From NCBI GenBank assembly GCA_009103225.1, contig RHPI01000277.1, positions 642,074 through 706,073 of the forward strand: a stretch of DNA of 64,000 nt, given 5' to 3'. The notes beneath the pieces were generated by a model. The model did no database searches. It was given only the letters and a program-made list of their open reading frames with translations, and was not told where the DNA came from. The DNA is from Chlorokybus atmophyticus (Eukaryota; Plantae; Mesostigma and Chlorokybus algae). Within the stretch, counting starts at the first letter, position 1. Each line of letters starts with the position of its first letter. This document shows, piece after piece, positions 18,731 through 61,900 of this stretch. Position numbers and translations under genes: made by a program.

Positions 18731-18822
18731 GTGATTGAAACTTTACAATGCAACGATTTGGTCCTTGGTTCGCTGCCCGGACGGTACCTGGTCCTGACGC
18801 GATTAAAGTTGACGGGGCCATA

Positions 18823-19284: not shown

Positions 19285-20979
19285 TACATGGTGCGACCCC
19301 AAAAAAACATGGGACCGTTCACGTGAGGTTTGGACTATGCATTGTCCGACTATCAATGACGGACCGACCATATATGGTCCGCTAATCTGATTTAGCAGAA
19401 GAAAATCCCGATCCAGAGGTACGGACCATTCATGGTCCGTAGACGTCAATCGGTTTGAAGTGCTTGGTGTTGTCCTGCCCAACATGCATCGCGCTGTTGT
19501 GTACAGCAATTAAACGGCACATGTGAGGCAAGCAATTAGGGACAGCATAGTCTTTGCCCAATAAAGCATACGCGGCATCATGGCAAAAGTATTGATTGAC
19601 AGGGGGGCTACACGGCCAGGCTGTCGGTGACGATCCCAGGAATGCTACATGGCATGACACAATAAAATGCTGCACCTCATGCTTAAGGTACGAGTCATAT
19701 TCACAAACATGCATTCAGTCCGTGCACACACACACGAACAACCAAAGCAAACCAACACAGCGCCACACTAACATTACACCCGGCATGCATGTGGCAAGAC
19801 CAAACGTACATGATTGCGTTGCAGGCAATAGACAACACCGCATGCACGTCTTCTGCCAACCAAGGAAGCAAGCTAAGCCTGCAAACCTAGCATCACAAGA
19901 GCTGTCGAATCAGTAGCAACATAAATGCAAGCCCTTGGCTATGTTGTTGCTTGCTTGGTTTAGCAAGGTCATACATTTATAACTTGTGTTTTAAGTGCTA
20001 AGCCCCGTGTGCTACCGTGTAGTTTTTTGCTTAAGGAATAAGCTATTGCGCGAAATTGCTCCATTCACTCTTAGCATGATCCACCTGCTTGCTGCAAAAT
20101 CCGCAGCCAGCTTCTTGCTCTCCGGCACACGCCGTAAAATGGTTGCTACTCCCTGTTACCCATAGCATAACTTGATGTCTCCTCCTCCTCCTCCGCCACC
20201 GCCGCCGCGCACCTTGAACGTGCACAAGCACACTCTTCACACCGGTATCAATGCAGGTAGGGCTGTATTTGCTCGCTACCAGCGGCGGCGGGCGTTGGTG
20301 CACTGTATCTTAATGAGGCAAGGAGAGGAGTAAAGCACAGTGGACAGCGAGGAGAGCTGAGGTACAGCCACCGGCTTGGTCAGCACTGGCAAGTTTGGCG
20401 CTCATGCTAAACTTGGACTACGCTGGCTGCTATGCTTGCAGAAGACCTGCTTACCGGTGAAAACGTTAGCTTGTAATTCGTTGTTGAGTAGCCTTGTGCG
20501 AAGGGATCAACATGCGAGCAGCATGGCGCTCGCGTTTTGCCCTGCCATGCTTGACGAGTTGCCGGAAGCGGACGGCGTAGTGGTTATGGTTGCCGGCATG
20601 GGCTTAAGCCAAGCTTGTGAAAGGTTGGCGCATACAACATGTATGTGTGACATAAACAGTCGCCTTCATGACACATCCTCCTGCGTTGCTTTTAACCGCG
20701 GGCCCGACCCTCGCATAGCCTTGCTTGATGGCGGGATGCTTGCACCCAGCATTCGTGGCAAGCGTTTAACAGCTGCTCTGCTTTTAGCTCAACCGGTGGC
20801 TGTGCTGTCATGTGTGCACTCTAGGACCACTTGCTGGCTTCCGCTCTGTTGTGCCATTACCTTGTTCAATTTAAGGAGCAGGCATACGTTATTGTAGTCC
20901 TCGTCTTATGTGTTTCAATTGCGTGAATGAGACTTGAGCTTGGCAATGTTAGGTGCCAGTGGCTTTGGTACATCTCAAT

Positions 20980-37587: not shown

Positions 37588-38857
37588 CATCGCAATATTT
37601 TTCCCCTGCCGGTCGATTAAATATTGGCAACGGCTATGCACCTGAAGATACGTCTTTAGACTGTCGTTGCTCAGTCCACCTGTACTCTCGATACACGTGC
37701 TTGAGTATAACGGCCGTCCCCGGCCGTTTACACAAAGGGACTGACTTGGACGGACAGGTACCTGTCAGTTACATACCCGTTATGCAAAAGGGACTTACCT
37801 AACCAACCGGTACCTGTTAGTTAAATACAGTTAGTGTACCGGTGACTGTACACTAACTCAGTGTGACTAACAGGTACCTCATAGTACCTTTTCCCTACCG
37901 GCCGTTATTGATAGGTACGTTTAAAGGTACCTGTTAGTACCGTCAAGATCATGATTAGATACTCAAGTGCGTGACAAAGAACGGCGACTGAAATAAAAAA
38001 TACAATATATATTGTAAACTATAAAAATACTACAATGTATGCACAATCTGAACTACCTATTGTGAGCTACTACCATTACTACTACCCTAGTCTAAGGCCT
38101 TAATAGAAAGTGGCGCTCCTGCACCGCGCTCTACCTCCGCCGTCGCTCCTTATCCACCGCCGCTCCTGTAAAGCACAAGGCAATTATTCAAGCGCAGTCA
38201 ACATCAACATACACAACCTTCACACTTGCATGCTGTCGCTTACCATGCCGCCGCCGCCGCCGCCGCCGCCTGGCCTGGCTTGACCTGGCATGGCCTGGTT
38301 TGGCTAGGCCTGGCCTAATTTGATATGGCTCGGGTTGCCATGAGACAAGAACGGCAATTAGCTTGCATGCGCATAACAACGTCAGCATACAAGCTCACTT
38401 CCTGAAGGACGTCGCCGCCGCCGCCTCCTCCAAGCGCTCACCTGTTCAACATTTCAAGCCGTTAAGCCTTGGGCTGCCCAAGTCATTCAAACGCTCAACG
38501 CTACAAAAGCACCATCGTACCATTCAAATGGTTATGTCATTACTATTAGTATAGCAATGAAAATTTTGTACCATAAATATGGTACGAATTAATTGCAATG
38601 TACCACCGTCCCGACTTACCGACATTACTCGCCGACACATAGGGACGGGCGGTAACTTGCTTGCATAACGGTTAGGTCGCCGCCGCGTTAAGTGCACGAC
38701 CGGCGATCGGCCTTCACTTAATGTACGCGGTAAGGTCACCGATCGGGATTAAAGGTGACTAGCTTGCCATAGTAGGCAGGCCGTCGCGCATATTTTCCGA
38801 CGGTCAGGGTACGACCGACGGTCGGCCGTCACTGTATGTGACCAAAACGTGGCTTAT
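37588..38857. mobile_element. MITE family A copy 2, interrupted at 38857/38858
   Basis: Starts CATCGCAATATTTTTCCCCTGCCGG and is collinear with 10347-11660. Homology stops at GTGACCAAAACGTG(G/A)CTTAT, equivalent to 11660 of copy 1. Confidence 0.8.
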
Positions 38858-39453
38858 CGTCGCAAGTTTTACACGGTGACTGATTAAGGACTGAGGGACT
38901 GACTGGTGCCTGAGCCTGCCTGAGCCTGCCTGTCGCTGCCTGAAATGTTACTTTTGGACCTCTGGGTTTGCCGTTGGCTTGAGTGGACTGACGCAGATGG
39001 CCGCGGGCCGAATGTGGTTGTCAGCGGCACCAACCGGCCGAGAGTTGTCAACCGGTTACCCTTTGGTCGATGTGCACACACGGCCGTTAGCCGGTAGTTA
39101 CGGGCAGCTAACAGCAATAGCCGGCAGTTTCTTTGCCGTTACACTGCTGTTAATATGTGACCCTTGTCATTTAACAAAAGTTGGCAATTCTTGCCGTAAG
39201 CCAACACCAACATGCCATGCAGCTTGTACAAACCTTGGAGTGATTGTTTGGCTTGCACCTATAAGCCCACAATATATACAATGTACCGGCAGTGGTGAGA
39301 GTATGTCCACTTGCAACTGAGCAGCCGACTTGCGCATGAAATACTACCCTACCCTATAACATTGAGTCTAGCTGTCGCGCTCATGCGCAGCTTGTCAACG
39401 CGTGGTGCCTGCCTCTGAACTGCTCCTCAAACCCCCTCCTCCTGTTCCTCCTC

Positions 39454-40299
39454 CTACAAGTCTTCTGCTTCAACATCGGAGTCATCTTCATCCGCTGCCT
39501 CGCTCGCTGACAGTACAGCGGCTACTTCGTCCTTCAGCTTGAATGTCAGCGCCTTGCCGTGCACGCGCATGCGCTTGATGGTCGCTTTGAGAGTGACCAC
39601 CTGCATTTGGTAATGCTGTAAGAGTGGCGTGCTGCCAGAGGACGAGCTTATCAGCATACACATGCTGACCTCGTCTTCCGCTTTGTTGCACTCCGCCAGG
39701 CAGACAGTCAGCCTGCCGCGCTGCTCTCGGTTCACTCTGACAAACATGGCAATCTGCAAGCGTACTGCTTAATTGCAACGGGAAACATTGAGAAAATTAT
39801 GGATTACCCGTTCGGGGTAGACCGCAGCTTCTCTTTTGCGACTTGTGAGCTCCCGCAAGTAGAAATAGGCTGTGCATTTGTGAGATTGGTCATGATGTTC
39901 ATGTGCATGACACTGGAGGCTGTGCATGAGGGCGTGCACGTGGTATTGACAATATATGTCATGTGCAAGATACTTGAGGCTGTTCATGTGCAAGATAAAA
40001 GAACCCTAGCATGTGGCACTGACAGTGCATCGTAACCCACCTTGGTTATGCCAGTCTTGTTTGGTCCCTTCAATCATGTCGTCGTGGTCGCAGTTGCTGG
40101 TGAGTCGGATGTATTTGAAGGCAGTATTGTGGTGTGCCTTTGCCCACTCGGAGGGGGAGCCCTGTAAGATATCGCCCGAGTTACTGTTGTCATTGGCTGT
40201 GCCCTTAGTAGGCATGGTGGGGTTTGACACCATGGACACCCCACCGGCACCTTGCCCGCCCTGTGCGAACATGAAATTCATCCCGGACCTCGACCACAA
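39454..40299 (-). CDS. Orphan spliced gene of the large element, divergent from the transposase
   Basis: ORFs 40006-40299 (PSEWAKAHHNTAFKYIRL...) and 39454-39759 (coiled-coil-like, acidic tail) have plausible coding composition. No family recognised. Confidence 0.35.
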
Positions 40300-40735
40300 C
40301 GCCCACTACGCCCCTGGCAGCGCCGCCAATGATCCACCAAACGCCACATACCCTCGTTATCACCGCCCTGTAAGGGCAGCTTGGCGGAGCCATTGATGGT
40401 ATTTTCATGCGCAGGGACTGGCATTGCCAGCACCTGTCAATGGTACGAACGGCCATTGCCACTGTACAAAGGTGTCATTGAAGTGGTACCTTTTGGCAAA
40501 GGCATCTTCGTACTATTGAAATGGTTCAATTAGGATATTTGTGCAAACTCACCCCACCCTGGACGTGCAATGACTCGATCATACCATAGCAGTGGTACGA
40601 CGGAGCCGTCACGCCAGTGATTGGCGGCCAAGTTTCCCGCCTATTGCATGCAAGGGTAGCGGCGGCGGTGCGTGTTGCTGGATATGATGATGCAGGTTAC
40701 ATTGGCGACACCTGTATTGATGTCAGTAGTGAGCT

Positions 40736-43700
40736 ATGGGAGTCCTTTGTCCGTATTGCCACATTCGCTTCGCCACACGCTGCTCGGTCTACATGCACAT
40801 TGTTAGCAGCAGAGTGTGCAAGCAAATCAAGTTGTATGTCGGCCAGCGTCCATTACAGTACAATGCGGGTCGTGTTGAACCGGGGAGTTCAATCCAGGAT
40901 GCGCACATGCTTGATGCTGAAGGACCCCTCGAGGAAACACACGCACAGCAGCAACAGGAGAAGGAGGAAGTGAATGAGGGCTTTCGATGTGTGCGTGTGC
41001 CTGAGGAACCTGTGGCACGCCAGCATGAAAGTGGAGGCGTCCCTTTGCACGCATTGGAATCCAGGTGGTATGGCTCAGAGCATGCTCTTGTAGTAGCATT
41101 CATGCAGTGCAACAACGGCCAAGGCCTGTCGGAAGAGCTTCAGTGGGAGACCGGTGTGCATGTGGCTAGCTACCTCCAGAGCACAATTGCTTTCTCCATG
41201 TCTAAGGTGTGTTCACGGTGTGCGGTGCATGTGCTTCAACCATCAGAGCAATGTCACATATGCACATGCGAGTGTGCTGCCGTATCAGAACTACGTGACG
41301 GCTGACATGCGCAAGCCTGGAGACCCTGAGGATCAGGACATCAGCATCACATATATGCCGGCCAAGGTCTGTGAAAAGCAGTATCTAATGCAGTATCTAT
41401 GCAGTATCTAATCTGAGGCCAGCATGCCTATTAATGCTTTGGGTCGGAGCAGGTATGAATTGCGCGGTTGTATGGCAATCCACATGCCGCTAATGGCTTC
41501 AATCTTTAGAATGGTGGTGACGAGCACAGCTTTGGCATCCTTCCACGGGCAAATGGTGGAAGGATGTGGAGGTGGATTTGAGGAGAGAGGTGGGGGAAGC
41601 GTCCTACTTGGCGCCTGCCATCCTGTACAGTGACAAGACCACGCTGGACAGCGCGGGCAAGCGCTCTGGCTACCCTTCAATGGCATCGCTTGCCAACTAC
41701 GGTTGGGACATGTATGCTAGCAACATGGGGGTTTTTATATATGATAGCGCTTCTGCCGTGGTGGTTCACGCAGTGGTCGGGCATCCCACCTGGGCGCAGG
41801 GCAAGGAATCGTTCTCCATTCGAAAACGTGAGATTTTTTAGGACGCTTTGATTGTAGTGTTAGGGGATGTGAAGCGGGCGAGTTGGAAGGTCTGCAGCTC
41901 ATCGACCCGAATGGCATCGAGCGTCGTGTGTTTCCCGCGCTTGTCAACTACATCAGCGACTTGCAGGTAGTGGGCATGCGTGGTTGTAACCGGATGCAGC
42001 CTGCCAGCAAACAGTGCATGGAGGATGTTGTCAGTAGAGCATGTTGTCAGTTAAGTATCTAAGTTTGTCGTGTTGTAGGAGACTGCCACACTCGCACGCA
42101 CTGTGTCGCGCAACCATGCACGACATCCTTGCGATGTTTGTCTCGTCATACAAATCAGATCTGTTGGAGATGGATGAGGACCGGGAATTGAGAACCGAGG
42201 CTTTCTACACACCAGCAATACGTCAGCTGCGGGCGGGCCTGCATAGCGGTGTTCGAAATGCACGCCAGACAGCCAAGGCTTTCAAAGAGCAGCACTCCAT
42301 GCATGTCGAGGAGATAATGGTCAAATTACTGGCATTCGTGAGGATCAATGGCTTTCCATGAAACCAGGCAATGTGGTTTGGCAACAGAATGCATTGTGGG
42401 GTTGGCGACAATCGCGGGTGCCGGGAGCTGACTGCTACTCTCGTCTTGCCCCTGACGCCATGCATGTGCTGGGAGGCATCATTGACCACCTGCTTGCTGA
42501 TGTGTACGACGCTGCAAAAAAACAAATGCGTCAATCCATGAGACAGATTTTGCAGGCCAGGCACGTCTTTGGTGTTGCCTTTGTGTTGAACACAAAAGCC
42601 AACGACACGTACTCACAAGTAGGTGTGCACATGCTGAATGCATGCAAGGTAACTTTACGGGTTTCGCACTTCAAGGCACCCACAAGCATAGTAGACTTCT
42701 TCCTGTCCAACCACTCCTTTCAGGTGGTGGAAAAAGTGGCGGTGCTGCAGCTGCTGCCGGTCCTTGCAGACGGTTTGCTGCTCGACAGTAAGGGCAACGA
42801 TTTCATTAACATTGCTGCCGCATCGCTTGCCCAGTAGAACAAGAAGTTGCTCAAGGCGCATGAACACACAAGCGAGACCCTGACCACAGCCGACAACGAG
42901 CTGGCTGCCTTCAAAGCTGCAGTGTTGCATCCGCTACTGTCGTCATATTCTGCATAAAAGTTAGGTTGGAAGATCGAGAAGATGCATCAGCTCACTCATT
43001 TTGGGCCGGCAATTGTCAGCAGTGGACACCCAAATTGGTTTAGCGCCAACCGCATGGAGCAGACGCACGCCCAAAATATCAAACGGTGGGCGCGTGGTGG
43101 CAACAACCATGACTACTAGGCACGTATCCAAAGGCATGGAGCTGTGGAATATGTGAGGGAGGATGGCATGGTCGTGGATCCCGAGATGCGCTCGGTCATG
43201 GCGCAGGCGCGGCAGGAGTGCTATAATGTAATGGAGAAGACGGACAAGTTGCTACGGATGGATGTGCTGACAAGGAGGGAGTCCCGCCCGTTTTGGAGCG
43301 GATCTGCGCGTAGCCGCCAAGTCGCCCTGAAAACTCCATTTGCCGACAAGCTGCCTGCCACCCGAGACAGCTGGTTGAGGAGGGAACAACTGGAGTTGGC
43401 CGACGGGTGGCGTGCTGTTCGCATGGTGAACGGAGGCACAGCGGTGTATATGACATCAGGAGTCAGCATGGCGCGCGCAACTGGGGTGTTCCATGGGCGG
43501 CCTTGGTTCTCTACACTTGAGTTGGAAGGTGATGAGGGCGGTGTGAACGTGACGTGGTGGGCTCAGGCACTCTTTTTTTGCGCGTGGTGGTGTTGGGTGG
43601 TAGCGGCGAGCGCGTGTGGAAGGAGGTCGTGTTTGTTCGCTGGCACACGAAGCTGGATGTGACGAGCGACACAAAGTGCATTGATCTCGAATGGGAAAAG

Positions 43701-43865
43701 CGTCGAGGGGGTCCACATCTCGATGTCGTGACTCTGGAGCAAGTAAAAGGCATTGTCCAGCTGCTCCCCACGTTTGACAAGAACAGCGCCCGTGTACAAG
43801 AGGGCAAGTTGGGTGAACGTTCACTGCCCTTCCACGTGACACATGTACTTGTCTCACTACTTTGA
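40736..43865 (+). pseudogene. Plavaka-type transposase, spliced and decayed
   Basis: N-terminal CPYC..H..C finger, then STGKWWKDVE..LAPAILYSDKTTLDSAGKRSGYPSMASLANY, LIDPNGIERRVFPALVNYISD, APDAMHVLGGIIDHLL, KIEKMHQLTHFGPAIVSSG..FSANRMEQTH, and C-terminal AQALFF..VFVRW..VKGIVQLLP. Several stops (e.g. 41839, 42835) and frameshifts. Confidence 0.82.
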
Positions 43866-44042
43866 GTTTGGAGCATATCAGTCAGTTAAGCATTGCTAAT
43901 CGTATGCTAAGACTTTTGCATGTGGACGTGTACAATACCGGGCAGCTGTCACTGCACAACTATCACCACGATCGAATGTGCCATGCAACATTCAACAATC
44001 AGTTCGCCGTGTGGCATTAAGCATCAATACAGTGCACCACAC

Positions 44043-45179
44043 TCATGCCTCATAGTTCCATGACACAGGAGGGTAGTCACAGCGCATATTCATTGTTTCA
44101 AGCATGAGACGCCCTATGCACTCCGCCATTGCGGGAGAAACCGCATTCGCTATGGTAACGGCCGAGGTCATCCATGGCACCAGCGCTGTTTGCCACACAG
44201 CAATGCGCCGCCCCTGGTGCTAGACCTGGTACATTTCCTGTGGCGCGTTTGATGTCACGATTGTCTTTTTCGCGCTAGCGGACAGGTGCGGTGATAGCAG
44301 TCCAACTGCCTTGCCCGCGTGCGAGCAGCGTGCTGGAGGGGTAGCTACCACTGGTTGTGTCTTGAACAGACGGTGTCGGAACGCTGATAGGCTAAACATC
44401 GTGCCACAAAGGGACAGATTGGGTCTGAGTGAGGAAGCTGCTCCTGGCACATTCTCAATCATAAACTTGACCTGGCTTGCAAGCAACAGACGTCGGATGA
44501 GCGGTATCATATCCTGGTGTCTCCAGGATGTGCCATGTGCCGCCCGGTGAGGTGCCGGGATAGCACCTGAATAGGCCTGGCATGGTGCACTGGCCCAAAT
44601 GAGCTCGTACTTGCTCAGCTTTCCTGTACTCAGGATGCATACATCGCGGTGTATGAAGGGCAGCGGGTACTCAGAGGAGGGACTTATGTCCATCCCGGTC
44701 ACGTCAACTTAAAAGCCTGCATGGCATAGACCGACACTGGCACCGCCACCGCCGCAGACCAGGTCGAGTGCCCTTGTTCTGCGTGTGCGTCCAAGCTTGT
44801 TGTTAAATGGCGTGTTTGTGGTCAAGGCTGGCCGTGGTGCTGGCCAGGGACTAGCAATGCTGCCGTCTGGGCTTACTTTGCGACTGACGTTCTCCCCTCC
44901 GGCGCGCAGAACATGGCGTGCCTCGTCAACTGATGTGTACGCGAATACGTTGTGCCCTTTGAAGTTGATGGTTTGTGGTCGATCACCGTCATCGAATACT
45001 ATACGGTGCTGGCCTGCAAAGACATTTTCCATTGCACCATGCACATACGATGCGTCCTCACTCTCGCACGCCACGAAACGATGCTGACCTAACGCTTGCT
45101 TGAATGATTCCACAACGCCCGCATACCATTCCCCATCCAGCGGCCAATGCACCATGACACTCGCACCGATCAGCTGCTC
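44043..45179 (-). pseudogene. Tudor domain + C5 cytosine DNA methyltransferase (prokaryote/phage-type), two in-frame stops
   Basis: One reading frame: LIGASVMVHWPLDGEWYAGVVESF..QHRIVFDDGD (Tudor, after removing a 75-nt intron at 45014-45088), motif I RALDLVCGGGGASVG, IV IWASAPCQAYS, VI FMIENVPG, VIII LCGTMFSL..RHRLF, and end WMT..IANAVSPAMAECIGR. TAA at 44709 and TAG at 44220. Confidence 0.85.
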
Positions 45180-45468
45180 GCCAACTTAACTGCGTTCTGT
45201 TGGTATACACACGTGCAAGTGAAACGCCAACAACATCAACACAAGAGCATGACTGCTACTGCCGCCATAGCATCCGCACACATGCTACATCGTGACCTCT
45301 TATCTTCATTGCAACAAGTCTGGGCTTTATACCCCGCCAGTCTCTACACACGTCTACATTGGCAAGCACCGCGTGCGCTACACTCAGCCGATTGCTGTTC
45401 TGTAAGCTACGCTGTCTAGCTCACAACCAGAGCTTTTCAACAAGCTAAGCCACGCCTGCTAAGCTTAC

Positions 45469-46223
45469 GTATCCACGAAGCTACACGATTTCTCCCAAGG
45501 CTCTACCAAGCAGCCTGGTCCGGAGTCCGTCATGACTCGACCGTCATGCTAAGTCTGGAGCCCACGCGCTTCTTCCTGGTACCTTCGACCCTCGACTCCT
45601 GTATGAAGGGCAAGCTGACCGGATACAAGCATCACCCATGTAATACCTTCAACAAGTTCCGCAGCCGATGCAGTGCGCTGTCCAACGGTCGATGGTCTGC
45701 CTCCTCTACAGCGGCCAAGGGATGGAACTGCCCATGCCCACACCGTGGAAGACTGCTCTTAATGCGACAACAGCTTCAACATGCATGAAATAAGCATACG
45801 CCCAACATAGCATGCAATGATACTTCGCGGTCCACTCTGCCAAATTACCTCCACAGCATCCACCACCTGTCCACTAACCACATGTCCCGTTGTTGTCCAT
45901 GTGAAGAAGCGCATGGGTTCCCCTCGCCACTCGAAGCATAAGTGCGAGCACGATTCGCACACGCACTGCACGCAATGGAAAGACTCGTGTTCTTTGCACA
46001 GCACTTGGCCGAGGCGGCAGCCAAACACGTCGACATTGTGTGTGGTGTGATGCCAGCAAGCAGCACTAAAACCGTCGCACACTGACTGCACTCGCTGGCA
46101 TTCAGTCAAGTGTGCTCGCATCTGCTGCCTACGGCCATTGGCACATACGTACACATTGCATTGTGGGCACACCAAGCATGGTCTCTTAGGTGAGGGAGAT
46201 TCAACTGCTGCCGCCGACATCAT
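45469..46223 (-). pseudogene. Cys/His-rich upstream exons, probable 5' part of the Tudor-MTase gene
   Basis: ATG at 46223, CPQC..MRAHLTEC finger, CKEH..HCVQCVCESC cluster, and a GTAAG donor at 45468. Linkage to the Tudor exon is inferred. Confidence 0.4.
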
Positions 46224-46354
46224 GCAAAATAGGGATCGGCACGGCTGCCCACAAACTGAGCAAGACTTTAGGGTATGGGCATTAACTTAGGGTTGCCTGC
46301 TTACGAACCCTAAATGGGTCAAACTTCAAGTGAAGCACGACTGTACCATGGACG

Positions 46355-47720
46355 CTATTGCAAACCCATGCATGGTACTGCATCAACATGAATGGTACTC
46401 CATCTATTGATGGTACTACAGTACAAGGATACTCGCATACTACCACGATCGTAGAGTAATGCTGTGCTGTCTTTCCTATGGAACCCAGAGCGCTGTCCGA
46501 GTTTGTTGCTGTCAACCATGCTCTGCACCAGCGAGGTATGCAAGCCATGCACTGACTCATGCGCCGGGCAGTCATCATACACATGTACAGCCAATGCTTC
46601 TGACAACAGCAGATCTCGGGTGCACCATGCACCATGCTGCAACCATACATGTACCTACATGGTTCACAGGAAGCCAACACAAAACTGCAATACATGCACA
46701 ATTGTCATCAAGGCGGGGGCCAAATCACCGCCGACACGTTGGCGTCTTGCATCAGGCATGGCGACCAAAACGGGTGAGGTTGCTTGCAGAAGGACACGCT
46801 TGTAGATTTGTTGATTTATTTGCCACGGTCTTCTAATGTGCTATAATGCAGACATGGCACATCGCTTTCTTGCAACAGGGCGTCTCCCCATCTGCTTTGG
46901 GGGGGGTGGCTCTTCAATGCAACAAATCAGCACACATGGTGCAAGCGGGTGTGCAAGCTGCCTCTGCCACCAAACTCTGTTATTGCGTTGCAGGCGTAGC
47001 GACTCCCATCTGAATGGCGCAGCATAACGCTCCACTGCCTGCTCGATCACCTATTGCCCATCTGCCGCCATACACCACCTGCTGGTCTTGGTGGTCTCGT
47101 CCAGCATGCGTGCATCCAGGCCCTCGACATGGCTATCGTCACCCGTGTACTCCCCCGCATCGCCATTTTCTTCGAGCTTCCACAGAATCAGCTCAACGTG
47201 CCGTATGACATACAGCCACTGCCAGCCAAAGCATGCCAAGTACAGCTCGAATGGTTTTACTTGCCACCCAGTATGTTCGCTCAGGTAGTAGGCACACATC
47301 TCGACCAGCATCAGTCGACATCAGCAGGTACATATACTGCAGCAGGTCGAAGTTCTGATCCGCGGATAGCTCAGGCACATTGCCAGGTTGCTGCGGCAGC
47401 AACAACACCATCATATCGAGGACGGCGAGGGGCCACAACGTAGTACGGATGGCCAAATCGTGTATGGGTTCCAACCATGGCCAATCCCCAGAGGTCTGTT
47501 TAGACCGCACTCTCCACGTTTGCTCCCACTTATTGCATGCTTTCGTCACCCACCTCGAGGCATGCCGCATGCGGTGATGCAGCGCGTGTTGGGCGTATTG
47601 TAGGGCGATCAACTCTTGTGCACTACGAGTCAGCCTCTCAAAGCGTCTGCGCGTCGGTGCTTTGAGCTTAGGCAGCTCGTGCCGCACCGACTGTCTCTCT
47701 GGACGATGCTGAGCAGCCAC
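46355..47720 (-). pseudogene. IS630/Tc1-like transposase remnant
   Basis: HTH-like ASRWVTKACNKWEQTWR and LSADQNFDLLQY..MLVEM..YLSEHTGWQV, first-Asp-like MLDETTKTSRW..ADGQ, and second-Asp-like VHVYDDCPAH. Frameshifts and stops; no TIRs found. Confidence 0.5.
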
Positions 47721-47816
47721 TTGACGCTGTAAACCCGCCTGTGCCTACTCAGGACACACAGTCAGCCCCAGTGAGGCTTCAAGGCGATGTGCTTCTTCTA
47801 ACGTTATAACGATGCC

Positions 47817-50720
47817 TCACTTTTCCTTTTTTGTCATGTCAGCATCCTTTGTTCCAACAACCTTCTTCTTCTTTTTTTTGTCAACCTGCACATCCTGACA
47901 GGCGCTCTCTGTGGCACTGTCACTCAGAGGAGGTAAGGCATTATCTTCTTGCTCCACAGCCTTGCGCTTATTGGTTGCCTCCCGTTCCTCCACGACCTCA
48001 TGTTGCTTCATGAGGTCGAGCATGAAGCCTTTGTCTTTCAGCGCAGCTCTCATAACATCTCAATCAATCTCTTTACCAACAAGACAGGCTGGGATCAATG
48101 TGGCAAGCTTTGAGGGAGAGGGCGAGCTACAGCTGCTTCTTGATGGAGATGCCTCCGGATGGTCAGAGTGCGGTGGCAAGTGAGTCTCCGCGGCAGGAGG
48201 GAGGGTGCTGAATTGTTATTGCGAGCATGTGGCTATGGTTGAGGGGAGGCAGGATGTGCAGAACACTCGGCTACTTGTTGCCTAGCACAAAAGGTGAGGC
48301 CTGAGGCGTTGGCGCAGCACTCTGGGTCACAGCCGGTGGTAGCGGGGAATTGGCAACGCCATTCCGCCACTCTCCGATCAGGTGTGTTACCTCCGGTGGC
48401 ACTTCATGCATAGGCCACGACCACTGTTTGGTGCTTGCAGGCTTGAGGAGCTCAAAGTGTGCTTCTGGCTCATCAGGAGCAGTATTGCCCACCACCAGGA
48501 ATAAGTTGGGGGCTTCTTTATTTCCAACCCAAACTGCGCTGTCGGGCCGTGGCACCCACTCCCCATGCTCGCGCTGAACGGTCACGCAGCCAATCAACAA
48601 GCCCAGTTTGTTGGCAAACATGGTCATGTACAGGTGCTCGACGTACACATCTTTTCTCCGCACGATTTGTCGCACCTTGGCCATGGCTATGTTAATGTTG
48701 CAATTGACATCATCCAACATGGTCGCAGGCAGTTTGTCGTAATACTGCGCCATCTCTCCCGCGGCACCAGTGGCTCTGTAGAAGTCTAGGATTTTCTCGC
48801 CACGCCTGCATCAACAGCCTTGGCGGTGATTTTGCGGAGAGTGTCCCCCCTGCCGTCGTCGTCCATGGTGTCCAGCATGGCCCAAAATCAGCTCGAGCTG
48901 TGGTACTTGTGATTATCCAGGACACTTTGCGCTATAGATGGCCTGGCGCGAAATACACAATGGTAGAAGCAATCATCATCCGTTGGGGCATTGAAGTGGT
49001 CCCATGAGGCGAGCTGGCCACCTAGCATGACTGATGGCCGTATGCGGGTTGCGGCCAGCTCCTCTGATGACTCGCTGGCAGGTGGTGACCCCTGCTGCAT
49101 GCGCATATAGCACTCAAATGGTGTGTCCAACTGTGGACGGCAAGAGTCATAGTGACCGATAAAGTACCTGAATTTGGGGCAGACTGCCGGCTTCAACTTT
49201 GTTCGGGTGGAGTAAGGTAGGTGCAGAAACCACATCGGTTGTTGCATTTTGCTGTGGTTTCGCTGGTGGCGGCAAGAAGGATTGTTGCCCCGCAATCACC
49301 GTTGCTGCTTGTGGAGGAGATGGCACTGCATAAAGGACTGGTGCCGCGGAAGGTGGTTGCGCTCTGGCTGCGAGGAGAGCAGGAGCGGCAGGTGAGACCA
49401 CTTGTGCATGCAGCAAGGGGGGTTGTATACAGGACCCAGCATAAGATGGCTCACAATGTTGCAAAGGACAAATAAAAGCTTATGCAGTGTCTAACGCATT
49501 GTTACCAAGGCACGAGCATAAACGACAGCGACTTACCTCAATGGCCCATGGGCTGCATGGAGCAGGGGAAGCCATGGGGGCTGACAAGGTGGTATTGGGT
49601 GCACTCTCCCCGCCACCCTCGATCGCAGACTCGTCACGGAGCTCGTGAGCCATGGGCACATCATGCGCCACTGCCCCAATGGACATGTCGGGATTCAATA
49701 GGCCAACATGCATGTTAAACGGATGCCGCATTGCCGCCGCGCCCATCAGCAAATGGGATTGAAGAACCAGTTGATGGGATTGAATCCAGGCTTGCATAGC
49801 AGCTCCTAGTGCACTGTGGTGCTGTCAACTAATCACATGTGGGTTAGCTGCATGCTTGCGACACTGCAATTGCAATAGTCAACTGCGTCACACCGTCATC
49901 AGTTGGTTGCTTCGAACAGTCACCTGCGGCATTACTGGTTGATGCACGAATGATTGCATAGACTACGAGATTGCTGGTTGATGCATTGGTTAAATGCCGG
50001 ACAAATGGCCACGCGCTCCTGTGCTCAAACCCAGCCTACTTCGTTCGGCACGCGCGCGCGATATCGCACGCTCACGCACATCCTAGCATGCAAAGGTAGG
50101 CATGCATTGGAGGTGCATGCGGTCAACATGCACAGCGAGATTGGCAACAACATACCGCCGCCCAACTCTGTCTATCCGCTCTGGGTTCCGCAATGTTGGC
50201 TTGACTGTAGGGTGAGTATGGGTGAATAGTGGAGGCCTGCAGCCACGCTACATGTATCACTTGGACTGCGCTAAAAAACAAATTGCTCTTGCAAGGAAAT
50301 GCATGAGACTGTTGCGAGCGTACCTCTGCATTCTTGTGTGCTTGTTCCCACAGCCGCAATTGGTCCCGCATGGTTCTGACCAGGGGCTCCAAGGACTGCA
50401 GCTCCTAATCCACTCTTGTTGCAGAAAGCGAGCCACCAAGCAGCTCTCTGTGTGAAGATGGTCCTTAATGGCTTGCCTGCTGGTTTGTCCAATGTTGGTG
50501 ATGCATGTTTGACAGCCCCATTGCTGACGCCTGCCATGATCCATGACATGGCGCCCGGTAGTAGCTGGCTTCGCTGCTTGAACTCTTACGACCACAACTT
50601 CTTGCAAGATGCGCCACGCCGCCGCGGCCGCCGCCGCCTCCTCCGACTCCTGGTCCTCCGCCTCGTAGTCGAACTCAGGCCCACTATGCCTGACATTCGA
50701 CCCGTCATCGACCTGGTGCC
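47817..50720 (-). pseudogene. Multi-exon gene with an N-terminal C2HC-like finger and an OTU-like cysteine protease domain
   Basis: WGCQTC..IKDHLHTESC; HFNAPTDDDCFYHCV (Cys 48969-48971), LRKITAKAV, DVYVEHLYMTMFANKLGLLIG, NLFLVV..AHFELL (His 48457-48459). One TGA and one frameshift within the domain. Confidence 0.55.
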
Positions 50721-50802
50721 CCTGCGTGCCATCATCCGGCCATCAATGAAGCGTGTTTGCGTGAGTGCACGCTAACTCCCATTTGGGCTCATCGAGCAAT
50801 GC

Positions 50803-50832
50803 CTCTGTCGTACCATGAATGGTACGACAGAG
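50803..50832. promoter_or_regulatory. Palindromic CGTACCAT/ATGGTACG site between divergent genes
   Basis: CTCTGTCGTACCAT-GA-ATGGTACGACAGAG has 14-bp perfect arms; a near-copy lies at ~50870. Regulatory role is inferred. Confidence 0.45.
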
Positions 50833-51134
50833 CCATTGTACGGCAATGGTTGGGGTTGGACGAGAGATGCCTCTGTCGTACCATAAATGTTACGACACAA
50901 TCATTGGTAACAATGGTTGTACGAAGCATGGATGCAACGAATGCATAAGTCGTACCATCAACCATCGGAGCAAGGACGCACTACAAGTGCGACTTTAGTG
51001 CGGGACACTAGACGTTCAAAACCGTGTCATTTTCGTTTTCGCACTTCGTACACGGCCCAACCGGCGGCGGCAGTGTTGGAGGCGGCAGCGCCACTATCAG
51101 CTAAACAGGCGGCACCCGACTATCAGTTGGAGAG

Positions 51135-52940
51135 ATGCTTCGTGGTCCATCCGTAGGTGCACCTCGTCGTGGAGGTCGGCGCCAGTTGTCCACATTGCCC
51201 CCAGTGTTCAACCAGGCAACCGTCGCCAACCAATCGCAGCAAGACCCCGCGCTAACGCCCAGCACATCACAACAACTCCACCTGACACCGCAGTCGCAAG
51301 GGCAAGCTAGACTGCATGCGTTCTTGATGCACTGTGCACGTTGCTTCTTGCTCAACTTCTAACTTGGATGCTTGCTTCTTTCGTGACTGGCACGGCGACT
51401 CACTGCATGCGTTCTGGATACACTGTGCACGTTGTTCTTCTTTTGCAACTGTGAGGGTTGCATTTTTCATGGCTGGCAGCATGACTCATGTGGTTGTGCT
51501 TGCAGAGGGTTGATTCGAACCCCAACCCAAACGCTTTTGGCCGTGACGTGGCAACCTCGGCAGTCAGCAACCCTTCCCCAAGCAAGTGGAAGATTGGCAA
51601 CGAGGTAAGCACTGTGTGACACTGTGACACTGTGTGTAAGTGTGTAACGGATTGTTCTTCTGTGGACAGCATTTGTGAGATGCCGTCGTTGAAATCATAA
51701 ACGGCCACATTTGTCCCAAGGAGAACACTAATCGTAACGTCACGTGTCAGGTGCTGTGAATGCTTCAGACCGCACTGCACCGTGACACTGACCAACGTGC
51801 CCGTGATAGGTAGTTGGCTTCAACCATAACGACGAGGCCAATGCGGCCAAGTTCTATGAGGTGTACTGGACTCCCAAGGAGTGCCCCTTCCACTGGAGTG
51901 TTGCCTTGAAGAAAGCTATGCAGGTTCGCTCCGAGAACGTCACAAAGATCAAGCATGTCCTTGAGAAGGAGTACAAGTGGACACTGTTTAACAGCAACAA
52001 CCGCAAGTGAGTTGGGTCCCTTACCACCATGTCTGCTATGCAACACTGCCTTCTTACTCAGCCTCCACACACACGTACACATCTCGCCTATTGTAACGGA
52101 TTCAGGCACATCGACGCCCTAATGGACCCCGAGACCCAAAAAGCCCAGATGCGCAACGCGCTCCAAAGTAAGTCGCAGGCACTATTCTAGCCTGGTGCAG
52201 GCTCAACTTGAACTACCTGTATCGTAACTAATGCCTTGTTGGTATGATTGTCGCAGACAAGTCATAGCGGAGATTTATGGTGACCGATAATGCAGACTCG
52301 AGCGGAGGAGATACATCCATGAATGGGGCAATCCCATAATCTGCCAAATGATCGTGCAATGCTGGTCTTACGCCGTCACTACACCTGGTCGCCGGCAGCT
52401 GACAGTCAACCACCTCGCATACCTGTTGCTTACGGTGAGCACTCTGAACTCCATCATTAGCAATTCAGGAATGCTGTAGCCCCAAACTGCGGGCTTGCAG
52501 ACGCGTTGCAGTGAATAGTGGCTTTCAATGCCACTAAGACATGCCCATAAACTACGCAGGTGGAGCGCATCCTAAAGGGCAAGGATGGAGACCCTCTCCT
52601 AGCTGCCAGCATCAACACACACGAAGAGTACCTCAGCGAAATCAACACCATGATCATGTCAAAGAAGCGGGAGATGAGGCAACGGTACGCAGCCCTCCAG
52701 CTATTCACCCTTGTGAAACGCCGCACTGCATCTTGTGTCAAATACCTAAGAGATCCTAATCGGCGCCGACCGCAAGAGACAGCAGCTCGTGACCCGCTCA
52801 CTGAGGCAGAAGCGGCATTAGATTGGCTGGCACAACCGTTTGAGGAGGAAGAGCAAGCTCCGGCGTCTCCTCCACAGGCCCCAGCGCGTGGTGCTTTGTT
52901 CCATGATGACGAGCAAAGCGATGATGGAGAGGAGCTGTAG
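51135..52940 (+). pseudogene. Orphan spliced accessory gene of the large element
   Basis: Exon-like blocks FYEVYWTPKECPFHWSVALKKAMQVR..EYKWTLFN, YIHEWGNPIICQMIVQCWSY..HLAYLLLT, and VERILKGKDGDPLL..EEYLSEIN.. with an acidic tail ending at 52940. Contains stops; 5' structure uncertain. Confidence 0.45.
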
Positions 52941-53673
52941 CGCAATTGGTAGTCCGTTTAGCTGGTAGTGTACATAGCTGCAAGGCTCTTGTGACTGAGT
53001 GTTGTGCATCTTAAACCAGCTTAGTCAATCGTTGTTATGCTCATGTATGTCAATACTTGCATCCCTATGATATACAACAGACCTGCATTCGAGTCACATA
53101 ATCGAACTACAAGCCTTGGCAAGTGCCTGAGAGACACTGTACACATCTCAGGTACATGTACACAGCACGGGCACACAACAATGCTGGCAGTCAGTGACAG
53201 TCGCGTGTAGTCAAGCTATGCAAATACATATGACGACAGTTAGGCATCAGTCATCTTCAGTATTTAAAGAATGCCTTATTTTGTCGATAATTACCTAGTT
53301 GGTGCTTGTAGATTAGGCTTTGTCGCCTGCGCTGGACTAGTGTGTAACCTGCAGGTGCCTGTCACACAGGCTGAGTTACCTAAGTAAGTGTCGTGCCTGC
53401 CATGGTCGAGGGCAACCTTGTCTCGGACAGGCTGCGGAGGAGTGCTAGTGCTGCACGCATGCTAGTGCCGTGCACTGCATTGCAGTCATGCAAACAAAAG
53501 ACACCCCCCCAATCGTGGGCATAGGCTTGAAGATGGGCCTACGCGATGTTTAGTGCAGTGGACGAGCCGATGCCGCTCGCCACCTTTGTGTACAGACTGT
53601 GTCGTAGTGCACACAGTCAACAAGCCACCCCCCCTGAGATTCTGGGGTAGCCCTCTGCTCAAGAACTCAGTGC

Positions 53674-53907
53674 CTACCGACTGTGTGGGGGACCGTTGAT
53701 GCGGCAGTCATCGCACCAGTACTCCCACAAGGGTACTGCGTCCAGTGGAGGGTCAAGGCAGTAGCAGTGCATGCCTTGAGTACAGCCGTCGCATAACATC
53801 ATCAATGGGTCGTCGTCGGCGCTGCCACACTTCTCGCTTCGGGTGCTGCGCAGCGGACGCGGGTGCTGGATCTTGGTGAAGCCAGCAATGTAGGGGAGAT
53901 GACAGGG
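53674..53907 (-). pseudogene. PHD finger at the integrase C-terminus (shifted frame, not in the ORF track)
   Basis: PCHLPYIAG...SEKCGSADDDPLMMLCDGCTQGMHCYCLDPPLDAVPLWEYWCDDC; the first Cys reads Ser (AGC). Confidence 0.85.
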
Positions 53908-55129: not shown

Positions 55130-57247
55130 CTAGATGTCTTGTCGTGTGTCGGTGGGTGCCAACTCCTCATCATCTACCTTAGGGTCGGCCGCGATTGCTT
55201 CTTCTGATAAAGGATCGGTGGTGGTGATGGCGGGCTCGAGAGCGGGCATGTCCCCGTCTGCTGCTGCCTCAGCGATCTGAGTCCTGCGTCCTGAGCGTAG
55301 CGCAGCGACAGCGAACATGGTGGCCACACCTGCAGGTGCAGCTGTAGGACCCAACTCATGTCGGGCGCCTGTGGCGTCGTTGGTGCTGAGGTGGGGGTTA
55401 CGGCTGAGGCCATCCGCATCCTGGTTGGCAAGGCCTGCGCGGTGTTCCACCTCGAAGTCGTACTCCTGGAGCAGCAGCGCCCATCGTGCTAACTTTCCTG
55501 TCAAGTGCTGGTTGTTCATTAGCCACTTGAGGGGTTGATGGTCAGTGACCAGTTGGAACTGCCGTCCAAACAGAAAGGGTCGGAAGAAGGAGATGGCCCA
55601 CACTGCGGCGAGACACTCCCCTTCGTAACTGCTGTAGTTGGCCTGAGCATTGTTGTTGCTGCGGCTGGCGTACGACACTACGCGCTCCTTCTTGTTGTTG
55701 TCGTGCTGTACGAGCACGACCCCCATGCCGAGCTTGCTCCAGTCTGTGTGCAGGATGAACGACCTGGTGTAGTCAGGGCGCTGCAGAATGGGAGCTGTGG
55801 TGAGGCGGAGCTTCAGTTCCTGAAAGGCCTCCTGTTGTGCCTCCTTCCACAAGAACTCGGTATCCTTCTTCAGTAGTTCGTTGAGAGGCCTTGCGATCTT
55901 GGCAAAGTCTTTGACAAACCGTCGGTAATAGTTGCCAAGGCCAAGGAAGGCCCGCAGCCGCGTGAGGTCTGTGGGGGCAGGGATAGCCACCAGTGCCTCC
56001 ACTTTGGCCTGCTGTACGTACACACCATGGGGCACAATCATGTGTCCTAGGTAGGGTACCTTGTGGGTGAAGAAGGTGCACTTGTCAGGGTGCACCGTCA
56101 TCCCGACTTCCTTCAGCCTCTGTAGCACCTCTTCGATGTGCTGGAGATGCTCCTCATTGCTGTGACTGAAGATGAGGATGTCGTCGATGTAGCAGCGTGC
56201 GAAGTCCAACCCCTTGAGGGCTTTGTCCATGACGCGCTGGAACTTGGCCGGAGCGTTCTTCAGCCCGAAGGGCATGACCTTCCACTGGTACAGCTGCCGG
56301 TTTCCCCAGAAGGAAGTCTTGTGCTTGTCCTCCTCCTTGATGGCGATCTGGTTGTACCCTTGGCGCATATCCAGGATACTAAAGACCGTGCAGTCTCCTA
56401 CATCGTCAAAGATGCCTTCTGCGGTAGGCATTGGATACCTGTCCTGCTTGGTCTTGTTGTTGAGGGGGCGATAGTCGCCACACATGCGCCGGTCTGTCCA
56501 GTTGCCTGCTGAATCTTTCTTTTGGGGCATGACGGTCGCGGCCGCAAAGTCCGATGTGGACTCCTCGATCAGGCCTGCATCTAGCAGCGCCTTACACCTC
56601 TGTTCCACCAAGTCTTCTTCTAGCTTGGAGAGGCGGTACTGTCTTCTGAACACCGGTTCGGCGTTCATTAGTTCAATGTCCATCTGGTATGCTGAGCAGA
56701 TGCCCAGCTCCTTCACACTGAAGCTGAATTGGCTCCTCCACTTGTTGAGGAGAGCCTCGAGTTGCTCTCGAGTCTGACTTGTGGCCAGCGCTCCAATGGC
56801 GTGGGACCACGAGATAGCGTTGGCGACCACTGGAATGTCTTCCACAGTGACTGCTGCCTGCTCCTCCATGTGGGCGGTCTCGAGGGCGGTGTGTGCTGCT
56901 TTGGTCTCTGAAAAGCGAGCAATCCACCCCCCAACCAGGTGTTCGAGCTCCTGGAAGGACACATGGCGGTCCTGGAGAGCAAAGCACATTTCCAAGTACC
57001 ACACCATGCTGTTCTGATCCATGGCGCGTCCTAACAACTGACATTGTTGACTGGTTGTCAGCGTGGAGCATGTGATGCTGCCTGGAAAGAATCCCATAGC
57101 ACGCTCGCGCTCACGAGCGTTGGTTCTTCCAGCTGTCCAGTGTTGGAGTTTAACACCATGCCGTCGCCTGCATTGCGGAACGCGTAGGAGCCTGGATAGG
57201 ATACAAGTGTGGGTAGCGCGCGGCGCGGCTGACCAGGCTGGTTGCAC
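55130..57247 (-). CDS. Gypsy reverse transcriptase + RNase H (N-terminus carries the tail of the MTase)
   Basis: RMCGDYRPLN, YPMP, LDMRQGYNQI, MPFGLKNAP, CYIDDILIFS, FLGLGNYYRRF, LHTDWS..GVVL, EGECLAAVWA, TDHQPLKW. Confidence 0.97.
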   Translation of the reverse strand: MQPAWSAAPRATHTCILSRLLRVPQCRRRHGVKLQHWTAGRTNARERERAMGFFPGSITCSTLTTSQQCQLLGRAMDQNSMVWYLEMCFALQDRHVSFQELEHLVGGWIARFSETKAAHTALETAHMEEQAAVTVEDIPVVANAISWSHAIGALATSQTREQLEALLNKWRSQFSFSVKELGICSAYQMDIELMNAEPVFRRQYRLSKLEEDLVEQRCKALLDAGLIEESTSDFAAATVMPQKKDSAGNWTDRRMCGDYRPLNNKTKQDRYPMPTAEGIFDDVGDCTVFSILDMRQGYNQIAIKEEDKHKTSFWGNRQLYQWKVMPFGLKNAPAKFQRVMDKALKGLDFARCYIDDILIFSHSNEEHLQHIEEVLQRLKEVGMTVHPDKCTFFTHKVPYLGHMIVPHGVYVQQAKVEALVAIPAPTDLTRLRAFLGLGNYYRRFVKDFAKIARPLNELLKKDTEFLWKEAQQEAFQELKLRLTTAPILQRPDYTRSFILHTDWSKLGMGVVLVQHDNNKKERVVSYASRSNNNAQANYSSYEGECLAAVWAISFFRPFLFGRQFQLVTDHQPLKWLMNNQHLTGKLARWALLLQEYDFEVEHRAGLANQDADGLSRNPHLSTNDATGARHELGPTAAPAGVATMFAVAALRSGRRTQIAEAAADGDMPALEPAITTTDPLSEEAIAADPKVDDEELAPTDTRQDI

Positions 57248-58305
57248 TGGTAGAAGTGGTGGTGGTCAAGGCGTGTGACTGGTTGCGCTGTGCGTCCAGG
57301 GTCCAGGATGTCATCGACGACGAGATTTCGTGGCCGATTGCTGTATAGGTACTCTGCCAGAAACAGGTCTTCCACAATGGCCAGGTTGGTCCACTTGGCG
57401 CGGACGCGGTGTGCACGAGATCCATGACGCGCGGCGTTGATTTTGAGAGGATGCCCCAGCAAGGAGCATACTTGCCGATAGGCCTTGGCGACGTGATGCC
57501 GCTTGTCATCCTCGGAGTGCACATTCTCGATGATGTACCCCAAGGGCCTAGCGATCTGACTGGTCTGCAGGAGTTTGATGACTCTCATTAGCTCCCAGAA
57601 CAGCTGTGAGCGAGGATCAGAGAGCCCTTGGCCTCTGCCTGCCCTGGAGTGCCCTTGACACTCCCATCCTGCTATCAGCAGGTCAATGTTGCCGACTGCC
57701 TGCAGGTGATCCTTGGTAATCCAGCGGATGTCCTGCGGTAGAGCCTTCTGGCTCCCTTGCAGTGCCGACAGTGGTAGCTGCTGCGGGTAGCGCTGGTGCA
57801 GCTGTCGTAAATGATGGCTCAGAGCCTCCTGTGCATGAGGGTCAGGGTCACAGTAGAGGTACTTGGTGACTGTTGTTCCTGTGTTGAGGACAGCCGCAAG
57901 CCCACTGCCTATGCCTCCGAACAGCTCCAGCACGGTGATGCCTTGTTGTCGGCGGAACATGTGGAACTCCACAACTCCCGTAGCTATGTGGTACTGCTCC
58001 TGCACTGTAGCCTGGTCTTTGTAGACAGGGAAGTGTGCAGTGAGCTGAGGCCTGGTCAACAGCATGTGTGCTGCTACTTGTGCGCTCCAGCGACGCTCGG
58101 ATGGCACCTGAAAGGCCACTTCTTTGGTGACAGTCTCCTGAGACTCATCGTACGGTGTAGTAGAGTCCTCTTCAGCGTTTAGGCTCGGGCTCGAGCTCGT
58201 TGCAGTTGTCCTCGGCTGCGTTCGGACACGAGGCACACGTGGGCTTTTTGTAAGACTGTAGGTGGCTGCTGCAGCCGATCTTCGTTGCGAGCGGGCCTTG
58301 GCCAC
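57058..58305 (-). CDS. C5 DNA methyltransferase domain of the Gypsy polyprotein (DNMT3/Dcm-like fold)
   Basis: VLELFGGIGSG (I), LLIAGWECQGHSRAG (IV), YIIENV (VI), RAHRVRAKWTN (VIII). After a frameshift near 57120 the frame continues ERERAMGF..QCQLLGRAMD (IX-X). Confidence 0.9.
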   Translation of the reverse strand: MAKARSQRRSAAAATYSLTKSPRVPRVRTQPRTTATSSSPSLNAEEDSTTPYDESQETVTKEVAFQVPSERRWSAQVAAHMLLTRPQLTAHFPVYKDQATVQEQYHIATGVVEFHMFRRQQGITVLELFGGIGSGLAAVLNTGTTVTKYLYCDPDPHAQEALSHHLRQLHQRYPQQLPLSALQGSQKALPQDIRWITKDHLQAVGNIDLLIAGWECQGHSRAGRGQGLSDPRSQLFWELMRVIKLLQTSQIARPLGYIIENVHSEDDKRHHVAKAYRQVCSLLGHPLKINAARHGSRAHRVRAKWTNLAIVEDLFLAEYLYSNRPRNLVVDDILDPGRTAQPVTRLDHHHFYQCNQPGQPRRALPTLVSYPGSYAFRNAGDGMVLNSNTGQLEEPTLVSASVLWDSFQAASHAPR

Positions 58306-61617: not shown

Positions 61618-61689
61618 CACTACGCGTGAAGAGTGTGAGAAAGAGAAAGAAAGCGAAGTGAAGAAAAGTGACAAAGTGCACTGAAGTGA

Positions 61690-61900
61690 AGATCGAAGTC
61701 ACTCAAGACTGAAGAGTGAAGAAAAGACCGAAGTCACTCAAGACTGAAGGCGCTGAAGAGTGAAGTGAAGACCGAAGTCACTCAAGACTGAAGGCGCTAA
61801 AGAGTGAAGTGAAGACCGAAGTCATTCAAGACCGAAGTCATTGAAGTCACTCAAGAGTGAAGTGTAGATTAAAGATACTGAAGTCAACAAAGTCACTCAA
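61690..61900 (+). repeat. Tandem ~35-44-bp repeats in the Copia leader
   Basis: GAAGTCACTCAAGACTGAAG(GCGCT)..GAGTGAAGTGAAGACC repeated about four times, then degenerating. Confidence 0.85.

Follow-up and report, generated by a model that had tools for sequence, protein, structure and literature searches.

A 64,000-nt stretch of DNA from the streptophyte alga Chlorokybus atmophyticus (contig RHPI01000277.1, hereafter the window) holds, between positions 38858 and 53388, what is probably one decayed copy of a multi-gene transposon of the Plavaka family, at least 14.5 kb in length. Plavaka elements form a cut-and-paste lineage related to CACTA/EnSpm. The window is eukaryotic, with about 52% G+C and short, intron-interrupted open reading frames (ORFs). 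The reading as one unit rests on a terminus held in common with a miniature element, on palindromes, and on contigs of related genomes that exist in several variants and are collinear over 48.0-53.4 kb. These same lines of evidence favour the claim of an earlier first-pass annotation, made from the letters of the window, that the genes form a single multi-gene element; the IS630 unit and the boundary at 52940 that it included did not hold, and no paired termini close the unit. One-element status is therefore still unproven by paired termini, the right end lying beyond the window.

The left end is defined by comparing the window with itself. A complete, non-coding miniature element of 1.58 kb (10347-11925, plus strand; termini CGCCGCAA...TTGCGATG) provides the reference for the terminus. 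Of a second copy only the left 1.27 kb is present (37588-38857, plus strand). Here 37591-38858 matches 10350-11661 collinearly (71-79% identity), the collinearity ends at 38858, and the copy is interrupted after the position equivalent to 11661. The left terminus of the large element, CGTCGCAA..., has its first base at 38858, and 38856-38935 matches 11848-11927 in reverse complement (86% over 80 nt). Since the collinearity stops where this inverted match sets in, the copy at 37588 is best read as a miniature element broken by an element with the same type of terminus. The left terminal inverted repeat (TIR) of the large element (CGTCGCAAGTTTTACACGGTGAC..., 38858-38935, plus strand) is thus complementary to the miniature element's right end. 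The miniature element has both of its TIRs; the large element shows the left one only. The terminus that the first-pass annotation had placed at 38858 falls exactly on the first terminal base.

Four ends of the family are present in the window (CGCCGCAA, CATCGCAA, CATCGCAA and CGTCGCAA) and they align without gaps as CRYCGCAA. The complete miniature element is bordered by AT on both sides (10345-6 and 11926-7), a 2-bp target duplication that would arise by accident with a chance of 1 in 16. The left flank of the large element is likewise AT (38856-7), the left side alone being visible in the window. A first reading of the ends as PlavakaB-like, with a CATCA terminus, was dropped because CRYCGCAA with a 2-bp duplication fits all four; the likeness to PlavakaB extends over no more than four bases, at the start of two ends. 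Termini of the CRYCGCAA type would mark a distinct Plavaka sub-lineage.

Palindromes of the form CGTACCAT..ATGGTACG connect the genes to these termini. The motif ATGGTAC is found 18 times in the window, against a chance expectation of 6.8 +/- 2.5 in shuffled sequence. Seven copies lie in the two miniature elements and nine in clusters at 40440, 46343-46410 and 50810-50952, which leaves two for the remaining 46.6 kb. The first cluster (40425-40615), made up of palindromes and half-sites (ATGGTACGA, CGTACTATTGAAATGGTT and GGTACGACGGA), is upstream of the transposase gene. The second (46330-46425, with four ATGGTAC) sits on the 5' side of a minus-strand gene for a Tudor-methyltransferase fusion and the third (50795-50965, GTCGTACCATGAATGGTACGAC and variants) upstream of a minus-strand OTU-like gene. 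Individual sites correspond as well: CGTACCATTAGTACTAATGGTACG in the miniature element is of the same palindrome type as GTCGTACCATGAATGGTACGAC at 50.8 kb, and CGTACTATTGAAATGGTT at 40.5 kb corresponds to CGTACCATTCAAATGGTT in the second miniature element. A longer motif, GGTACGACNGA, has six exact matches, all of them in the miniature elements or the gene-upstream clusters. Since the palindromes are common to the miniature elements and the regions upstream of the genes, three gene units are linked to the family to which the terminus belongs. Shared upstream motifs had been noticed in the first pass, and the location of 16 of the 18 ATGGTAC copies bears this out. The palindromes are most likely binding sites for a protein encoded by the element, either the transposase or a regulator; shared promoters are the alternative. 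Several other motifs enriched in k-mer counts lay inside coding sequence, carried no meaning and were discarded.

The transposase gene (40733-43659, plus strand) is about 2.9 kb long, opens with an N-terminal C2H2-like finger and runs through several frames with at least five frame changes. One core piece, 41521-41838, matches the Plavaka profile PF18759 with 27.0 bits (E 3.3e-6, profile positions 90-143), above the gathering cut-off of 26.3 bits. The next, 41832-42059, matches profile positions 197-228 in collinear order at a sub-threshold 11.3 bits. Taken together the two pieces support the Plavaka-type transposase claimed at the outset. The gene is split by introns and probably also by frameshifts. 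At least one frame change, that between the two profile matches, appears to be a frameshift and not an intron, because the intervening length is about what the profile needs. Pieces further downstream show CSKC and DAMH strings; by eye, the strings LYSDKT, YISD, RCSKC and DAMHVLGGIIDH stand in the expected order. Between the terminus and the transposase (38979-40396, plus strand) there are ORF fragments with no family match, and what had been called an orphan gene there comes down to these.

The second gene is read from the minus strand. One frame, 45185 to 44046, codes first for a Tudor-like segment and then for a small, complete C5 cytosine methyltransferase, in which motifs I (DLVCGGGGAS), IV (PCQ), VI (ENV), VIII (RHR) and X (NAVSPAMAE) appear in order. 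A Cys/His-rich ORF upstream (45762-46286, minus strand), without a family match, is a putative zinc-finger exon of the same gene. A phmmer search of a library of 1.84 billion representative proteins returned 1941 relatives of the methylase, most of them 200-230 residues long; 510 had E<=1e-10 and carried PF00145. The best are 42-49% identical and none is closer than 49%. The Tudor segment (44850-45185, minus strand) matches chain A of PDB 7DE9, the Tudor domain of Arabidopsis thaliana PDS5C bound to histone H3 monomethylated at lysine 4 (H3K4me1), with E 6.5e-6 over 40 aligned residues (GEQLIGASVMVHWPLDGEWYAGVVESF versus GESLVGSRIKVWWPMDQAYYKGVVESY). The Tudor-C5 methyltransferase of the first-pass annotation is thereby upheld. 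The profiles it had named for the region gave a mixed outcome. PF18759 was matched as described, whereas the methylase piece reached only 15.9 bits against PF00145, and neither Tudor nor OTU (PF02338) obtained a Pfam match. A single-sequence AlphaFold model of the Tudor piece was unusable (predicted local distance difference test, pLDDT, 42).

The relatives of the methylase point to phages and viruses. Of the nearest, one is encoded on a phage contig (L001, with terminase and Mu-F), and another (P0002, 47-49% identical) on a giant-virus-like contig (L002, with topoisomerase II, the small subunit of ribonucleotide reductase and a U-box). Neither a Tudor nor a Cys/His part was found in any of the 150 best relatives, and the contexts of relatives P0001-P0004 and P0009 contained no Plavaka, Tudor or OTU neighbour. 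A scan of viral contigs with the methylase piece was blank. Because the Tudor segment matches PDS5C whilst the methylase has its relatives on phage and giant-virus-like contigs, the gene looks chimeric, a plant-type reader joined to a writer of virus or phage type. From the 7DE9 match the reader would be specifically of the PDS5C/RDM15-like, H3K4me1-reading kind and not a generic Tudor domain, which suggests that the element captured a host reader domain. Among the closest relatives, P0004 (L004) and P0009 (L005), both on short contigs, have a small C5 methylase fused to an MBD domain, another fusion of writer and reader.

A third gene, again on the minus strand, probably encodes a deubiquitinase-like cysteine protease of the OTU type (48274-49295). 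A Cys box (DDDCFYHC) and a His box (AHFELL) lie on two ORFs and come to stand 140 residues apart once an inferred 101-nt GT-AG intron (48806-48906), which keeps the frame, is removed. The protein-atlas neighbours of the OTU piece include 41 of 100 in the OTU set, largely OTU clusters of giant viruses (Nucleocytoviricota) with scores of 0.88-0.91, and its sub-threshold PDB matches are nairovirus OTU domains, at the Cys loop, with E of about 0.5. ORFs upstream in the same gene (49483-50742, minus strand) contain a Cys/His patch and a Pro/Ala-rich linker without a family match. Of the ZnF-OTU gene proposed in the first pass, then, the OTU part stands as probable from its motifs, albeit without Pfam or fold support.

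The remaining units fared less well. The stretch described as an IS630/Tc1-like remnant contains unmatched ORFs (47196-48059, minus strand). No ORF at 46.7-48.3 kb matched Pfam, and this interval has no similarity to the rest of the window or to a pogo/Tc5-type transposase at 13.7 kb, leaving the assignment without a family or similarity signal. The presumed orphan accessory gene in the right-hand part (51403-53388) likewise amounts to unmatched ORFs, in a part whose collinearity with related copies reaches 53388. In all, 30 ORF pieces within 38.9-53 kb were searched against Pfam; none belonged to the families PAG2 (PF01555 with SET) or PAG3 (ParB with a 2-oxoglutarate (2OG) oxygenase) known from a red-algal Plavaka discussed below. 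The pogo/Tc5-type transposase (HTH_Tnp_Tc5 and DDE_1; 13703-14572, plus strand) is flanked by 112-nt inverted repeats, 75% complementary, at 13188-13299 and 19176-19287, and the interval 13188-19287 is probably a separate 6-kb DNA transposon. A tandem repeat with a 152-nt unit is found at 18202-18728, two copies being 99% identical and a third 64%.

The right-hand part was compared with contigs of related genomes from three public runs (X1, X2 and X3), placed on 48000-53900 of the window. Over 48000-53388 the contigs are collinear with the window at about 95% identity; in X3, for example, there are pieces of 961, 1291 and 1443 bases among records 17-23, and in runs X1 and X2 between 1 and 11 distinct contigs pass over each listed site. 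The presence of several distinct contigs per site indicates that this interval belongs to a repeat family and is not a single-copy gene cluster. After 53388 the contigs diverge from the window and go on for at least 186 bases in sequence absent from it, and from 53389, where the window continues with TG, other contigs take over that are about 99% identical. The end at 52940 implied by the first-pass annotation must accordingly be moved: similarity to related copies continues to 53388 and is cut there by an inserted retrotransposon.

This neighbour is a Ty3/Gypsy retrotransposon with a C5 methylase domain (53389 to approximately 62000, minus strand), laid out as KnitGypsy-Dnmt3. It comprises integrase, RNase H, reverse transcriptase, a PF00145 methylase (57061-58305) located between protease and reverse transcriptase, protease and gag. 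No pair of long terminal repeats was found within the window, an exact-product look-up of the gag ORF was blank, and the Gypsy methylase has no detectable similarity to the Tudor-methylase. Most simply read, the Gypsy element has inserted into the Plavaka element, close to the right end of the latter. A tandem array of about 3-4 copies of a 44-nt unit (61674-61846) lies upstream of the gag ORF.

The copy in the window is inactive. Stop codons interrupt the methylase frame twice (TAA, 44709-44711; TAG, 44220-44222), leaving an ORF that is not competent to yield the enzyme, and the reading frame of the transposase is disrupted too. At 117 sites the window shows A/T against G/C in the related contigs, and at 49 the reverse (2.4x), which fits C-to-T decay of a silenced repeat copy. 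Similar decay of the units had been claimed in the first pass; the two methylase stops, the frame changes of the transposase and the A/T excess agree with this. Depletion of CpG was tried as a marker of the region and rejected, the region being no different from its flanks.

Several observations weigh against one Plavaka element with this cargo. (i) No right terminus or partner TIR was detected in 39-64 kb by pattern search, BLAST or Smith-Waterman alignment, the unit is not closed by paired ends, and the remainder of the broken miniature element was not found in the same interval. (ii) Termini of the CRYCGCAA type differ from those published for PlavakaA (TGT..ACA) and PlavakaB (CATCA..TGATG). 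(iii) The Pfam score of the transposase is barely above threshold, a marginal value that we attribute to the broken state of the gene; a word-indexed protein search with the pieces 42247-42834 and 43120-43659 did not find relatives, and a metagenome scan with the transposase core was blank, as was one with the Tudor piece. (iv) The OTU pieces had no Pfam match at E<=5 and an AlphaFold model (pLDDT 48) gave only noise in Foldseek, both being weak tests made on single exon pieces, and a word-indexed protein search with 48274-48810 returned no relatives. (v) The ATGGTAC motif was chosen post hoc, after inspection of the sequence. (vi) The contig evidence for repeat status is confined to 48.0-53.9 kb. 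Beyond the Gypsy element, a 30-nt continuation of the contigs after 53388 was not found, and a similarity between 52-53.4 kb and the left part of the miniature element, considered as a candidate, was not significant.

One rival reading makes the region a composite, with a shorter Plavaka element (the transposase, with or without the Tudor-methylase in tail-to-tail orientation) adjoining one or more unrelated repeats or captured host genes such as the OTU gene and the right-hand ORFs. The missing right terminus, and hence the lack of closure, speaks for such an arrangement. So does one low-depth X1 contig that skips 51358-53100 (1743 bases) with 22 letters only on one side; this contig may instead be a deletion derivative of the element. 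A composite origin is nevertheless unlikely in our judgement. One palindrome family recurs in the terminus-sharing miniature elements and at 40.4, 46.3-46.4 and 50.8-50.95 kb but hardly at all in the remaining 46.6 kb, and the related contigs are collinear right across 48.0-53.4 kb.

A viral origin would account for part of the gene content. Were the region a fragment of an endogenised giant virus, or of a virus-like element, its methylase and OTU gene would be viral, with the Plavaka transposase and the miniature elements inserted later. The nearest methylase relative with a known context, P0002 on its giant-virus-like contig, is in keeping with this, as are the mostly Nucleocytoviricota clusters among the atlas neighbours of the OTU piece. 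We consider this explanation very improbable. No scanned ORF holds a viral hallmark gene, an inferred spliceosomal intron interrupts the OTU gene, the Tudor domain belongs to the plant PDS5C type, and the fetched viral and phage contigs share the methylase and nothing else with the window; the terminus, miniature elements and palindromes moreover connect the region to a transposon family. Least probable of all is a chance position of ordinary host genes, one for a chromatin methylase and one for a deubiquitinase, between transposon insertions, an idea to which the introns and the plant-type Tudor lend some colour but which is opposed by the two stop codons in the methylase, the multiple variants found at single sites in the related genomes, the motifs common to the miniature elements, and the want of any annotated homologue above 49% identity in the protein library.

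We propose that the large element landed in a 1.6-kb miniature element from its own family and that the Gypsy-Dnmt3 retrotransposon later inserted at 53388/53389. The last few hundred bases of the Plavaka element and its right terminus would then lie beyond the Gypsy element, outside the window, where the sequence would be expected to read ...TTGCGACG at the terminus, then AT, then CTGCTATACGATAGG..., the last being the remainder of the miniature element, homologous to 11662-11925. In an intact copy a DDE transposase would bind the CRYCGCAA inverted termini, move the whole unit and leave 2-bp duplications, by analogy with the Plavaka/CMCT family (PMC12730594). The accessory genes would be the Cys/His-Tudor-C5 methyltransferase, the probable OTU deubiquitinase and the unmatched ORFs. 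The Tudor domain would direct the methylase to chromatin bearing H3K4me1, and the OTU protein would strip ubiquitin from a chromatin factor or a silencing factor. Such cargo would write or edit chromatin marks at or near the element and bias host silencing in its favour. More tentatively, and with somewhat less than even confidence, we suggest that the family as a whole may be a still-mobile streptophyte-algal Plavaka of 14-16 kb, equipped with an OTU deubiquitinase and with a chimera of host-derived H3K4me1 Tudor and virus- or phage-derived C5 methylase, as a cassette that hops between transposon superfamilies.

Giant Plavaka elements with accessory genes have been described in a red alga. 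In Bostrychia moritziana they measure 17-19 kb, carry the accessory genes PAG1-3 and make up a third of the genome; the accessory genes encode an N6-adenine methylase with SET, a ParB with 2OG-oxygenase and one protein of unknown type, inverted-repeat arrays lie beside one accessory gene, and the cassette also occurs on other transposon superfamilies (bioRxiv 10.1101/2025.02.11.637652). EnSpm families of 16-20 kb in Chondrus crispus are mentioned in PMC6431247, which cites earlier work. The element described here resembles the red-algal giants in joining a Plavaka-lineage transposase to several accessory genes over more than 14 kb in an alga, in the predicted role of these genes in DNA or chromatin modification, and in that inverted-repeat arrays adjoin them. 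Most red-algal copies are degenerate and the present copy is likewise dead. The cargo differs, Cys/His-Tudor-C5 methylase and probable OTU protease replacing the N6-adenine methylase with SET and the ParB with 2OG-oxygenase, and so does the host, which is a streptophyte and not a red alga.

In fungi, TET/JBP genes are carried by Plavaka (PlavakaB), KDZ and other DNA transposons (Kojima 2025, PMC12730594), an association that this source credits to Iyer et al. 2014. Fungal elements of this kind share with the present one a DNA-modification enzyme as passenger and a 2-bp target duplication, and with PlavakaB there is the CATC start in two of the four ends. Their termini are CATCA..TGATG or TGT..ACA in place of CRYCGCAA, their passenger dioxygenase removes methylation where the methylase here would add it, and the OTU gene and the reader domain are additional in the algal element.

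Other mobile elements bring cytosine methylases or Tudor domains by different routes. Retrotransposons with a C5 methylase include SymbioLINE/DIRS-Dnmt and KnitGypsy-Dnmt3 of Klebsormidium nitens (PMC5890265), and one such Gypsy adjoins our element. These elements too possess their own C5 cytosine methyltransferase, but as a domain of eukaryotic Dnmt3 type within the Pol polyprotein, whereas here a separate spliced gene on a DNA transposon combines a small phage- or virus-type methylase with Tudor. Algal DNA transposons are known to carry ParB-N4/N6 methylases, and Gypsy-10_Ec32 of Ectocarpus has been called the first Tudor-bearing mobile element (PMC12477816). In the former, as here, the DNA methyltransferase is on the strand opposite the transposase, yet the ParB-fused enzymes are of the N4C/N6A type and not of the C5 type. 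In the latter a mobile element has a Tudor reader, as here, but there the reader belongs to the integrase of a retrotransposon, whereas in the present DNA transposon it is fused with a C5 methylase.

No DNA transposon combining a C5 methylase with an OTU gene and a Tudor reader came up in full-text searches of the literature. To this extent the first-pass annotation was right to regard the arrangement as undescribed, although Plavaka elements in algae, and giant algal ones with DNA- or chromatin-modifying genes, had already been published. Its view of Plavaka as mainly fungal and associated with TET/JBP is sound as to the fungal elements but too narrow, given reports from red, green and streptophyte algae and a moss (PMC13519894). 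The new part is the cargo, on an already known kind of giant algal Plavaka transposon.

The interference of genomic parasites with silencing by their hosts can be seen in transposons that carry enzymes for marks on DNA or chromatin. Known cases are TET/JBP in fungal DNA transposons, Dnmt3 in retrotransposons and, in DNA transposons of algae, N6/N4 methylases combined with ParB or SET. To these a Plavaka element with a deubiquitinase and a C5 methylase joined to an H3K4me1-type reader would add one in which a DNA transposon carries writer and reader together. The cargo also suggests gene flow into transposons from viruses, for the methylase, and from the host, for the Tudor domain. Though dead and truncated, the copy has value as a dated member of its family, in which terminus, miniature elements and gene-upstream palindromes are linked within one window. 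If the proposed reading is true, a DNA transposon would practise cytosine methylation guided by a histone mark, a mirror image of the TET-carrying fungal Plavaka, and it would do so in a lineage close to land plants with a plant-like methylation system.

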